From NCBI GenBank assembly GCA_039096225.1, contig JBBPEB010000029.1:868001-932000 (forward strand): a stretch of DNA of 64,000 bases, written 5' to 3'. Positions 1 to 21,853 of the stretch are shown one piece after another (positions within the stretch are counted from its first letter, which is position 1; each line of letters opens with the position of its first letter). The notes below the pieces were generated by a model. It was not told the DNA's origin, did not search any database, and was given only the letters and a program-made list of their open reading frames with translations. A program made the translations under genes and the position numbers. Source of the stretch: Blastocystis sp. Blastoise. Its lineage: Eukaryota > Protista > Bigyra: Opalinata.

Positions 1-449
1 TCTGACCAGGGTAATATCCTACATGTTGACCAGGATGAAGTTGAATGCAAGCGACATTCGCAAGATCTTCATAACCTTGTCTATATATATATATGTATAT
101 AATAAATATAATAATATTAAATATAATAATATTAAACAAAACAAGCATAAACATAAACATAATAAACATAAACATAATAATAAATATCTCTTTAAGCTTT
201 CATAACTGTGACCGGTAGCTGCTGCCGCCACTCCAAACGCGCCACAAATGCTGGTGCCCTGAACACCACGGAACTCACTGTCGATTCCCGCGATATTATC
301 AGCAATAACACGCGCCTGACGATTGGCGGGACCAGCAAGAGCCAAACAGGTAGGCTTTTTAGTAATAAAATCATAAGTTTGAACAGCATCTCCCGCGGCA
401 AAAATGGCGGGATCGGAAGTACGCATGTGACTGTCAACTACTATACTAT

Positions 450-526
<77 letters not shown>

Positions 527-643
527 TCTCATGCCAAGTTCAAGACCAGCTTGTTTGGCTAATTGTGATTCGGGGGATATACCAACGGAAAGTAACGCCA
601 AATCACCATTAATAACTTGACCATCACTACATACCATCTATAT

Positions 644-692
<49 letters not shown>

Positions 693-1143
693 TATATATA
701 CTTCTAAAGAATCATCTTCCTTAGTTCTGATTTCTTTTAATCCAGTACTATATTAATAATAAACATAATAATAAATATAAATATAATAATAAACATAATA
801 TTAATAATAAACATAATAATAAATATAAACATAATAATAAATATAATATATATAATTTGTATATAAATGAACACCTTCCTTCGTGATTTGTCTCTGTAAA
901 TAATTAGCTAAATCTGTTGAGAGAATTGGAAGTACATGAGGGGCCATTTCTATTATAGATACATCTAAACCTCTATATATATATATAGATATATATTAAA
1001 TGTTTAATTATATATAAATATAACAAATAATAATATATATATAGTATACTGATGTTTAAGGTTTTCAGCCATTTCCAGCCCAATAAAGCCACCTCCCACA
1101 ATAACAGCCTTCTTAGCTTGACGATCAGCAATCCAAGACTTTA

Positions 1144-1184
<41 letters not shown>

Positions 1185-2063
1185 CTTTAATAAAAAAAGA
1201 TTAATAAAAATATAATAATACTAACATAAATAAATATAATAATACTAACATAAATAAATATAATAATATATATACTTGATTACTATCAGGAATATCACGC
1301 AGAATAAAGACGCCGGGAGCATTGACACCAGGTAATCGCGGGACAATAGGTTTAGAGCCGGGAGCTAATACCAAATAATCATAAGCTTGAGTATAAGTAT
1401 GGTATATAGAATAAAATAAAATAATAAACATAAAGAATAAAAATAAATAAAATTTATAAATAATAAAAATGATAATTATAAATATACGTATGATTTGTAT
1501 TTGCGTCTTTGACGGTAATCGTTTTATTTTCTTTATCAATAGATAATACTTCATGTTTTACACGAACATCAATGTTAAAATAACTTTTGAAAGTAGATGG
1601 AGCAGTAACGACTAAACTACTTTCCTATATATATTTAAAATATACTAATCTCAAGAATTATCACTTCATTGATCCATAGAAGATACGAATTTATAAAGAA
1701 AATAATGATATCATAATAAAAATACTTTTTCAATGACATTACCAACATAATAAGGTAAACCACAATTAGCGAAAGAGACGTAATTGCCCTTTTCAAACAT
1801 CATAATATTAGCAAATTCATCTAAACGACGAAGTCTATAGAAAATAAAACATATTTATAAAAGAAGAGTTGATTGAAGAGATATTTAGATTTTATTTATG
1901 CTTAGAATAGTCCGATACATACCTGGCAGCAGCGGAAGCACCACCAGCTACACCTCCTACAATGCATATATTCTTAACTTTAGAAACGGTTCTAAAATAA
2001 TGTTATTCATATTATCATTGCAATATACGACATAGTTCTTAATAAATTAATTCTGCTCAACAT
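1..2063 (-). CDS. cdr: CoA-disulfide reductase / NADH-dependent persulfide reductase-like flavoprotein with a putative mitochondrial/MRO targeting peptide; 3' end runs off the window; 9 introns visible
   Basis: Spliced translation: MLSRINLLRTMSTVSKVKNICIVGGVAGGASAAARLRRLDE...SFANCGLPYYVG...IVGGGFIGLEMAENL...MRTSDPAIFAAGD...ALAGPANRQAR...HPGQHVGYYPG. SFANCGLPY (redox Cys) and YYPG are CoADR-family motifs. Confidence 0.9.
451..526 (-). repeat. Intron consisting of GT(AT)35AGAG
   Basis: Read directly; exons join as LGMR|NSIVVDSHMRT. Confidence 0.85.
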
Positions 2064-7313: not shown

Positions 7314-9000
7314 TTAGTATTCAGCATTTGTTGCTTTTATAAGTAATCGTTTAACTGTTTCATATACAGTCCACGAGAGAGCAGCCGCAGGAGCCTGTTG
7401 AAATATACGAGCTTTGGCACCCATAAAAAAGGCGCTAACACCTTCCTCACGCTATATAATATAGATAATATATATATAAAGGGTATATAATATATGTATA
7501 TAACTATATATATATACATATAAACGAGAAGCAGTTCCTACTAATCCTCTATATTGTTGTTTTTATATATATATATATATATATATTAAAAAAATTTAAA
7601 ATAATAAAAAAAAAAAAATAAAAAATAAATAAATAAAAAATGAAAATATTTTAATTAATGATTCTGTTCCAGCCGCTTGTTTGATTTCCCAATCATTTGT
7701 TTGTAATCTAGTTTTAATAACATCAAGAGGACAAGTTAAGAAAGCACTAATACCGCCAGAGAGAAAACCACTTAATAAAAATGCACCTGTATTTTATATA
7801 TATATATATATATATATATTAATGGAGTAAGAAGTATTATAAATAATAAAATAAATTATATATACAATATATATAAGATATCATAAATAGAAATATTATA
7901 AATAATAAAATAAATTATATATACAATATATATAAGATATCATAAATAGAAATATTAATAATAATAAAATAAATTATATATACAATATATATAAGATATC
8001 ATAAATAGAAATATTAATAATAATAAAATAAATAATACACATAATAATAATTATAAGATATCATAAATAGAAATATTAATAATAATAAAATAAATAATAC
8101 ACATAATAATAATTATAAGATATCATAAATAAAAACACAAATAATAATAAAATAAATAATACACATAATAATAATTATAAGATATCATAAATAAAAACAC
8201 AAATAATAATAATTAAAAAACAATATATATTATTTTTGTTTTCCTGAAGGATTGAAGATACTTTTAAAAAAGTCATTACAAGCCACAAGAATAGCACTAT
8301 TCGGTATATTCATTAATAACGTAGTAAAATAAGAAGCGTATAATGCACGAATACCATCTGTCTTAATAATAACTTTAAATGCATGCCAAGTATGTTTATA
8401 TAAACCTAATTGCATTCTTTGTTTAACACAATCTAAGGGAGTCATTATACTGTCGTGAGCTAAAGTAGCTAGAGAACCAGCTAAAGCACTTACAATCGGA
8501 TTATGTACAATCATGTTAAAAAAATATATTTATTTAATTAAAAGAATACATATTTATTTAATGAACATATATAATTTAATGTTAAATAATAATAAAATGA
8601 AATCAATAAGGATATTTTCATGTTCTTTTCCAAAAGCATGTAATGTGCCTTCATAAATACTAAAAAAGCAGGCATGAGCAGGAATACAAGCAAGAAAAGT
8701 AGGTGTCATTCCTCTCCATAATCTACGTATACCACGAACTCGAACCGAACGTTTCAAATATTCTAAGTTATTTTCATATTTTGGAGCAAAAACACGTGTG
8801 TGCATGTGATGATGTAAATCACGATGATTATTTGGTTGAGCACTAACCTTCTTGGAAGTCACAGCTACTTGCATATTTGTTCTAATAGTATCTATAGGAA
8901 AGAAAACAACATGCTCAGATATTCCAGCAGTAATACCAGCCAAACAGTGTACACCAAAAGAAACTTTTGTAGGATCACGTATTTCCCAATCGTCACTCAT
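7314..9000 (-). CDS. Mitoferrin (MRS3/4, SLC25A28/37-type mitochondrial iron carrier); 4 introns, 3 of them non-GT-AG
   Basis: Three carrier signature motifs (FPIDTIRTNMQ, TPLDCVKQRMQ, CPLDVIKTRLQ) plus the mitoferrin-type EH/HD residues, PAHA and SYFTTLLMNIP. Confidence 0.9.
7835..8212. repeat. About 60-bp intronic minisatellite, about 6 diverging copies
   Basis: Recurring TATAAGATATCATAAATA core. Confidence 0.85.
8505..8615 (-). other. U12-type AT-AC intron (mitoferrin)
   Basis: GAA A|ATATCCTT...TTTTTTAAC ATGATTGTAC|AT AAT CCG; restores the frame EHENNPIVSA. Confidence 0.9.
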
Positions 9001-21266: not shown

Positions 21267-21372
21267 ATATTATATAGGAGAAATGTGAGAAGTATTGTAG
21301 TGCTGCATATCGTGCTCCGGAATTATATGATCCCATGAAGGGCATGGTCTTGATATATATATAATACATCTA

Positions 21373-21403
<31 letters not shown>

Positions 21404-21853
21404 CTAACATATCTAACATATCTAACATATCTAATATATCTAATATATATATATAGTGGATGGTTGTGTTGATATATGGTCTCTCGGGTGTACCCTCTAT
21501 GCTATGGCCTTTGGTATGTCACCTTTTGAATCACCTATCGAAGGTATATATATATATATATATACTTATTATTATTATATTACTTTCTCTATTATTTATA
21601 TCTCTTTATATTATATATTACCTCTATACATACATATATTAACTATTCTATATATATATATATAGGTGTAATGACTCTTGCTATATTAGATGGTAAAGTA
21701 ACTTTCCCTGCTAATAATACTTATCATTGTTGTACTTATTCTAAACCATTCTGTAAGTTTATTAAAATGATGTTAAATCCAGAATATAAAGAAAGAATTG
21801 ATATTGAAGATATTCTTGAAAAAACTGATTTACTTCTAGAACGATGCAATTAA
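18514..21853 (+). CDS. STK16/NAK-family Ser/Thr kinase with a long acidic Trp-motif N-terminal extension; 10 introns
   Basis: LGEGGFGSVYLV, FALKKM, HPNILPLID, HRDIKPHNVML, LIDLGSA, CSAAYRAPELY, VDIWSLGCTLYAMAFGMSPFE. Confidence 0.85.
21075..21261. repeat. (TTA)n microsatellite, intronic (kinase)
   Basis: Near-perfect trinucleotide run. Confidence 0.95.

Follow-up and report, generated by a model that had tools for sequence, protein, structure and literature searches.

Rare non-canonical splice sites of the U2 type account for a small minority of introns in human and plant genomes. Introns of the U12 type, which are removed by the minor spliceosome, are known with AT-AG termini. The nonconventional introns of euglenids have ends other than GT-AG, short repeats at their borders and ambiguous junctions, and they coexist with conventional introns. 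Here we describe three introns with unusual ends in one gene of Blastocystis sp. Blastoise, whose predicted product is a CoA-disulfide reductase (CoADR) with a rhodanese domain. The gene lies at the start of the window analysed, a stretch of 64,000 nucleotides (nt) from assembly GCA_039096225.1 (contig JBBPEB010000029.1, positions 868,001 to 932,000). Blastocystis sp. Blastoise is one of the tortoise-gut isolates described by Lind et al. (Genome Res 2025; PMC12129017), with a genome of 33.3 Mb and 21-23% G+C, and the window is AT-rich as well (19-29% G+C per 2 kb). The CoADR gene has 15 exons and 14 introns on the minus strand; its ATG is at window position 2033, and it extends ~900 nt past the window start. 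Its odd intron ends mean that splice-site rules are truly relaxed here, or else that the published genome contains an error. We lean, without great assurance, towards odd ends that are present in the DNA, on ordinary U2-type introns that are precisely spliced.

As read in the assembly, 11 of the 14 CoADR introns are GT-AG, and the others are intron 4 (I4; GT..AC), intron 7 (I7; TT..AG), and intron 10 (I10; AT..AG). The odd bases stand at window positions 1397 (I4), 855 (I7), and 187 (I10), which are contig positions 869397, 868855, and 868187. A sequence-only reading of the stretch had called these three introns, and homology, enumeration of alternative splice sites, and the deposited protein all agree with it. 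Thus, we regard the three non-canonical junctions as confirmed as they are read in the assembly.

The spliced homology model is a 560-residue CoA-disulfide reductase with a C-terminal rhodanese domain, and it matches 63 bacterial homologues from GTDB genomes over residues 8-556 at ~50-52% identity. In a 21-row alignment of the model with 20 bacterial homologues, no gap falls at I4, I7, or I10, and the alignment with the structurally known homologue 3ICR has none there either; the earlier impression that the exon spacing matches that of bacterial CoADR therefore holds. Residues conserved in the 20 homologues span each junction, namely TR..YD.LVL at I4, GV.L....GL at I7, and L.R.G at I10. The deposited protein WA158_004864 (P0032, 565 residues, "hypothetical protein," Blastocystis sp. 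Blastoise) is the same as the homology model at every junction. The sole difference is an extra 14th GT-AG intron close to the stop codon.

All frame-preserving GT-AG, GC-AG, and AT-AC pairs were enumerated for I4, I7, and I10, and none of these options preserves the conserved residues. I4 contains no AG at all, as had been seen from the sequence, and no canonical pair was found for it; its eight nearest frame-keeping options are chance AT-AC pairs that add or remove 3 to 18 residues. For I7, which was said to have no suitable GT donor, the frame-keeping GT-AG options do lose at least 11 residues or replace conserved ones. At I10, the options either cost 5 to 11 residues or introduce 3 to 5 foreign ones. 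The GT-AG alternative that had been named for this intron, at the cost of 8 residues, exists, but it is used neither by homology nor by the deposited model. Because some bases are shared across each junction, its exact placement can slide: I10 can be read as AG-AT, GA-TA, AT-AG, or TA-GA, I7 as TT-AG or TA-GT, and I4 in six placements over CATAC. None of the slid placements has canonical termini.

The closest relative of the tortoise CoADR protein is a "disulfide reductase" of Blastocystis ST4 (56% identity, 697 bits). The remaining relatives found are all bacterial, with 50-53% identity, and the tortoise protein groups with that of ST4 in a single clade among bacterial sequences, with an SH-like support of 100 (FastTree). 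The simplest reading would be one bacterial-type acquisition before the tortoise/ST4 split, from a donor that cannot be named. Because the gene is of bacterial type, as originally proposed, and the relatives found outside Blastocystis are all bacterial, its introns post-date the transfer, which had also been foreseen.

All 11 introns of the ST4 orthologue (L089, strain WR1) are GT-AG and 29-33 nt long. With a 10-residue offset, introns 1-6 and 10 of the tortoise gene correspond to ST4 introns 1-6 and 8 by residue and phase, and tortoise introns 11 and 12 correspond to ST4 introns 10 and 11 if small indels are allowed. Compared with ST4, introns 7, 8, 9, 13, and 14 are found only in the tortoise gene. 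The ST4 counterparts of I4 and I10 (introns 4 and 8) are GT-AG in two independent assemblies, WR1 and BT1, and start GTAGGT and GTAGAG, as major-type introns do. ST4 has no intron at the site of I7. This comparison of intron positions and termini between related species had been suggested as a check; it finds canonical ends for I4 and I10, and leaves only I7 without a counterpart.

Since introns with GT-AG ends occupy the same residue and phase in ST4, I4 and I10 are old, ordinary introns with one altered terminal base. The odd ends thus appear to be derived from canonical ones within the tortoise lineage, and not to be ancient relics. The sequence-only reading had also placed the rise of atypical introns in this lineage, which is correct for the ends but not for I4 and I10 as introns, because these were not newly gained. 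The CATAC repeat that flanks I4 had been likened to a target-site duplication. However, I4 is old, and its ST4 orthologue carries no such repeat; CATAC is therefore not the duplicated target of a recent insertion.

The three odd bases share a property. Each is identical to the mRNA base across the junction: I10 and exon 11 both begin with A, I7 and exon 8 both begin with T, and I4 and exon 4 both end in C. The last five nucleotides of I4, CATAC, are the last five of exon 4. A kinase intron elsewhere in the window (positions 21351-21456, plus strand; T/TGATAT...ATATAG/TGGATG, with slashes at the junctions) behaves similarly, in that its first two bases equal the first two of the next exon. No fitting GT donor was found for this intron, and a GC-AG pair that drops three residues exists. 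The junction is backed by a 13-residue spacing from APE to DIWSLGC, which we take to be the spacing of STK16-like kinases.

Ribosomal protein genes extend the pattern. In two copies of RPL39, the donors read AG/ATAC..., with 4 nt in one copy and 9 nt in the other that reproduce the next exon, and the acceptors are normal (TATAG). The last two introns of both RPL17 copies lack a 3' AG. These two copies share ~280 nt of identical exon, and their introns are unalignable except for ~9 nt at one donor. Over the CoADR, kinase, RPL39 (two copies), and RPL17 (two copies) introns, the deviant base is the exon base across the junction at 15 of 15 positions, and all the changes are in-register substitutions that leave the splice-site consensus otherwise normal. 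The cases from ribosomal protein genes were pre-selected for odd ends; for the four introns in the window alone, the copy rule would arise by chance with a probability of ~1e-3, a rough estimate from a base-composition null.

In other respects, the odd CoADR introns resemble U2-type introns. I4 has a GT donor, and I7 and I10 have TT and AT where a U2-type intron has GT or GC; I7 and I10 end in AG, and I4 ends in AC. At positions +2 to +6, the odd introns have TATTT, TATAT, and TATAT, like the 11 canonical introns and in keeping with the extended consensus of this genome (GTATxT...TATAG). The 3' end of I4 is CATAC instead of the usual TATAG. Orthology likewise places I4 and I10 with canonical ST4 introns, and I7 is without a counterpart.

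Several observations bear indirectly on whether these introns are removed from RNA. Ab initio predictors of the kind used to annotate this genome do not, to our knowledge, propose TT-AG or GT-AC introns. According to its authors, strict RNA-seq support was required of every annotated intron, with STAR (at least three reads per junction), StringTie, BRAKER3, and Mikado (PMC12129017). Given this rule and the habits of such predictors, the deposited odd junctions should stem from spliced reads. In RNA run X1, the share of sampled CoADR-locus words that are present is 0.48. The predicted share is 0.416 for coding exons only and 0.545 with the three odd introns retained, and untranslated regions come on top in both cases. 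The observed share roughly favours full splicing over transcripts that keep these three introns.

If the ends are real, the fact that the odd bases copy the spliced mRNA would point to a templated origin. I4, I7, and I10, of which at least two are old, would be major-spliceosome introns in a gene acquired by lateral transfer, and each would have lost one terminal G in the tortoise lineage (G+1 to A in I10, G+1 to T in I7, and G-1 to C in I4). The remaining consensus, xTATxT at the 5' end and TATAx at the 3' end, would have stayed intact, and each odd intron would still be excised exactly at the ancestral junction. The odd bases may have arisen by a process templated on the spliced transcript. 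One possible route is repair or conversion templated by cDNA or mRNA, in which the copied tract reaches 1-9 nt beyond the exon end; this would be the same kind of event as that which deletes introns. The spliceosome of this lineage would then tolerate the odd ends, probably at reduced efficiency. Two further observations were counted in favour of real ends: they are also common to RPL17 and RPL39 paralogues whose introns have otherwise diverged, and the 1.7-kb CoADR coding sequence is free of frameshifts.

A number of points weigh against real, spliced ends. G+1 and G-1 are near-indispensable for known spliceosomes. Copying of the mRNA base at all 15 deviant positions is also what the bleed of spliced reads into a consensus sequence would give. 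Because 11 of the 14 CoADR introns are GT-AG in DNA of 3-23% G+C, their terminal Gs are under selection, which fits free tolerance badly. In both RPL17 copies, splicing would have to cope with GT-AC and GT-CT introns (or with CT-AC and GA-CT introns). Non-canonical splice sites go unmentioned in the genome paper (PMC12129017), and our literature search found no published account of odd-ended introns in tortoise Blastocystis. The broadest form of the proposal is that possibly ~9% of ordinary introns, including those of essential ribosomal genes, carry transcript-templated end rewriting in tracts of 1-9 nt and yet are precisely removed. We consider this generalization doubtful.

Other explanations need to be weighed against real ends. 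It is highly improbable that the junctions are mis-modelled and that the real mRNA uses nearby canonical sites to encode a slightly different protein. Frame-keeping GT-AG pairs are available at I10 (+3, +5, -8, or -10 residues) and at I7 (-11 residues or more), but they hit residues conserved in 20 of 20 homologues (LKRxG at I10 and GVxLxxxxGL at I7). For I4, a canonical pair is absent among those enumerated, and the RNA-based deposited model adopts the non-canonical junctions throughout. We give just as little credence to the idea that the odd introns are U12-type introns, which tolerate end variants and are numerous in Blastocystis. In Blastocystis ST1, minor introns number in the hundreds, and 77% are AT-AC (PMC10639083). 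A textbook U12 intron occurs in the same window, in a mitoferrin-like gene (8615..8505); the minor-spliceosome consensus is thus intact in the tortoise Blastocystis genome. However, the odd introns start ATATTTAT, TTATATAT, and GTATATTT, which departs from the donor motif (A/G)TATCCTT, and the last 40 nt of each odd intron contain no TCCTTAAC-like branch motif (10-15 nt from the 3' end). The ST4 orthologues of I4 and I10, moreover, start as major-type introns. The U12 assignment was rejected because these introns have neither the ATATCCTT donor nor a TTAAC branch site. Only slightly less improbable is that the splice sites are dead, in which case the introns would be mostly retained, the gene would be decaying, and the annotated junctions would be template switches of reverse transcriptase at short repeats. 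Non-canonical junctions with direct repeats are a classic sign of template-switch artefacts, and direct repeats of 1-5 nt do occur at the I4, I7, and I10 junctions. Nevertheless, the 15 exons are all intact, with conservation from one end of the gene to the other, and pseudogene decay would be unlike three terminal-G lesions with nothing else damaged. Both copies of the essential gene RPL17 show the same pattern, and the X1 word share fits spliced RNA. We rejected the pseudogene interpretation because the exons are intact and conserved and the deposited protein matches them. Taken together, U12 introns, mis-modelling, and dead introns have a small chance of being correct.

An assembly artefact is a more substantial concern, even if we think it unlikely to be the answer. 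True GT-AG ends could have been overwritten in short-read polishing by spliced RNA reads, or by cDNA carry-over reads, whose overhangs mismatch into the intron. Such an origin would account for a copy rule that holds in every case checked (three CoADR introns, the TG-AG kinase intron, two RPL39 introns, and four RPL17 introns) and for changes that are only in-register substitutions in an otherwise perfect splice-site consensus. It would also fit the fact that ribosomal protein genes, which are expressed at very high levels, are affected on both sides, and that the G is kept by the ST4 orthologues and by one RPL17 paralogue. The assembly was polished with Nanopore reads (racon, four rounds), then with PCR-free Illumina DNA (Polypolish, three rounds), and then with POLCA, a step that the genome paper words merely as "short-read polishing" (PMC12129017). 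However, the Polypolish reads are stated to be Illumina DNA, and the usual recipe gives POLCA the same DNA reads. The BT1 assembly, made by the same pipeline, was also set against the independently made WR1 assembly; the 14,995 bp compared cover an estimated 56 introns. Two single-nucleotide differences and one N were found, none of them at a splice site, whereas ~5 splice-site differences are expected if a rate of 9% applies regardless of strain. The sites most exposed to read bleed (the I4 donor, the intron 5 donor, and the I7 and I10 acceptors) are unchanged, but weakly exposed ones are changed; the I4 donor has 6-7 different overhang lengths that leave a single mismatch, and the intron 5 donor has 3. 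Moreover, copied tracts end after 1-2 fixes despite four rounds of short-read polishing, although the bleed-through model predicts longer ones. This model is a simple bwa-type one, and its mismatch with the observed sites amounts to tension, not disproof.

Either outcome matters. If the odd ends are real, the near-universal GT...AG rule is broken at many old introns, and in a patterned way. The tortoise lineage would then be a natural system for asking to what extent a spliceosome depends on the terminal dinucleotides. It would also offer a natural test of whether transcripts feed back on intron ends, a route that is thought to delete introns. On the scale of ~9% of introns, real ends would imply an unusually tolerant spliceosome or a choice of splice sites guided by junction repeats. 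If, instead, the ends are consensus errors, a published reference has thousands of wrong splice-site bases, which matters to its users and to surveys of non-canonical and minor introns.

The coordinates of the features are collected in Table 1.

Table 1. Features of the CoADR gene and of other genes considered. Positions are those of the window unless another locus is named; slashes mark exon-intron junctions.
Feature	Position	Strand	Description
CoADR-rhodanese gene, window part (exons 1-11)	1..2033	-	Deposited 565-residue protein maps exactly; exons 11-15 in L001
Intron 1	1992..2028	-	GT-AG, 37 nt, splits codon 2, common to ST4
Intron 2	1835..1922	-	GT-AG, common to ST4
Intron 3	1625..1725	-	GT-AG, common to ST4
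Exon 4	1488..1624	-	Ends ...NTNH(T)
Intron 4 (I4)	1397..1487	-	91 nt, phase 2, GT..AC: ac/GTATAT...CATAC/t
Exon 5	1276..1396	-	Starts (T)YTQAYDYLVLAPG
Intron 5	1145..1275	-	GT-AG, common to ST4
Intron 6	973..1049	-	GT-AG, common to ST4
Exon 7	856..972	-	Ends ...GVHLYT(N)
Intron 7 (I7)	748..855	-	108 nt, phase 2, TT..AG: aa/TTATAT...ATATAG/t
Exon 8	702..747	-	(N)TGLKEIRTKEDDSLE
Intron 8	638..701	-	GT-AG, tortoise lineage only
Intron 9	451..526	-	GT-AG, tortoise lineage only
Exon 10	188..450	-	Ends ...HSYESLK(R)
Intron 10 (I10)	81..187	-	107 nt, phase 2, AT..AG: ag/ATATTT...ATATAG/a
Exon 11 start	1..80	-	(R)QGYEDLANV..., runs on to L001:1181
Mitoferrin-like carrier, U12 intron	8505..8615	-	AT-AC, donor ATATCCTT, TTTTTAAC branch site 11 nt from 3' end
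RPL39 copy	L090 (G000:C15:230350-233442)	-	Intron after ...TIR starts ATACAATTC, 11-nt direct repeat
RPL39 copy	L091 (G000:C34:133734-136820)	-	Intron after ...TIR starts ATAC, 6-nt direct repeat
RPL17 copy	L092 (G000:C29:1058862-1062248)	-	Last two introns GT..AC, GT..CT
RPL17 copy	L093 (G000:C32:537798-541169)	+	Last two introns CT..AC, GA..CT

The G+C content of the CoADR gene is 27-49% in exons and 3-23% in introns, which are rich in (AT)n, (AAT)n, and short minisatellite-like repeats. Peptides from its exons match Pyr_redox_2 and Pyr_redox. Against Pfam, the full protein scores 3e-64 for PF07992 and 1e-6 for PF02852, and 21.0 bits for PF00581, below the cut-off of 22.2. The FAD and NAD(P)H motifs are present in the protein, as are the redox Cys (in a FANCG motif) and the rhodanese Cys (ISC(N)). 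By sequence, it thus has the CoADR-RHD/persulfide reductase architecture, with Pyr_redox_2, Pyr_redox_dim, a C-terminal rhodanese domain, and both Cys residues, and we predict that it is a CoA-disulfide/persulfide reductase with a rhodanese domain. Only ~8 residues precede the FAD-binding GxGxxG, which would leave no space for a long presequence of the mitochondrial type; the ST4 protein has 10 more N-terminal residues.

Searches of environmental data returned bacterial relatives of the gene. The exact exon pattern has no match in JGI metagenomes, and a protein-level metagenome scan with exon 10 gave only bacterial relatives, with at most 67% identity. A word search with exon 10 found no near-identical fragment, and no transcript-derived open reading frames of the tortoise organism in that length range. 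Separately, short Logan-derived open reading frames (P0024, P0025, P0008, and P0023) show 51-55% identity to exon 10 and then pass into unrelated sequence, in a manner that resembles an exon end. Other eukaryotes may carry intron-bearing copies of the CoADR reductase.

The mitoferrin-like gene has another unusual intron (7790-8233, minus strand, ~440 nt), which contains tandem repeats of ~60 nt. It is either GA-AG, if NPSG is kept, or a canonical GT-AG, if eight residues are dropped.

Among known proteins, the closest parallels are the CoADR-RHD/CoA-persulfide reductases of PDB entries 3ICR/3ICS/3ICT, 3NTA, and 8A56, with which the Blastocystis protein is alignable end to end; B. anthracis 3ICR aligns with its residues 8-554 (E = 6e-147). 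Unlike the bacterial genes, the Blastocystis gene is eukaryotic and nuclear and has 14 introns. The rhodanese loop is CNVGLT in the Blastocystis protein, whereas bacterial CoADR-RHD proteins have CxxGxR.

The introns can be compared with four described systems. Introners and other transposon-borne introns with target-site duplications (PMC9860276) recall the CATAC direct repeat at I4. However, I4 is orthologous to a repeat-free GT-AG intron of ST4, and the genome matches of the CoADR intron sequences are of low complexity only. Intron sequence at window positions 636-866 and 1145-1277 matches more than 25 other genome loci at 73-79% identity, and these matches consist of minisatellite-like ATAATAAACAT and AAT runs, which looks like shared low complexity and not like a mobile family. 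An origin as introners was rejected because I4 is shared with ST4 and the genome matches are simple repeats. The U12 AT-AC introns of Blastocystis (PMC10639083) are alike in genus and in the AT start of I10, and a true U12 intron is present in the same window, but neither the ATATCCTT donor nor the TTAAC branch site occurs in the odd introns.

Euglenid nonconventional and intermediate introns are alike in their odd ends, border repeats, and coexistence with conventional introns. In euglenid introns, however, a stable structure brings the two ends together, whereas the odd CoADR introns show no sign of one and keep the consensus in all but one base. The minimum free energy of folding of the three odd introns is no better than that of 200 shuffles (z = -0.18, +3.46, and +0.82), and euglenid-like end pairing was rejected on this basis. 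Rare U2-type non-canonical sites in human and plants (PMC4176328, PMC6310983) include AT-AG, TT-AG, and GT-AC, and share with the odd CoADR introns a single terminal deviation, a good consensus, and, if the latter are indeed spliced, precise removal. The Blastocystis case differs in that three of the 14 introns of one gene are affected, and in that each odd base copies the adjoining base of the mRNA.

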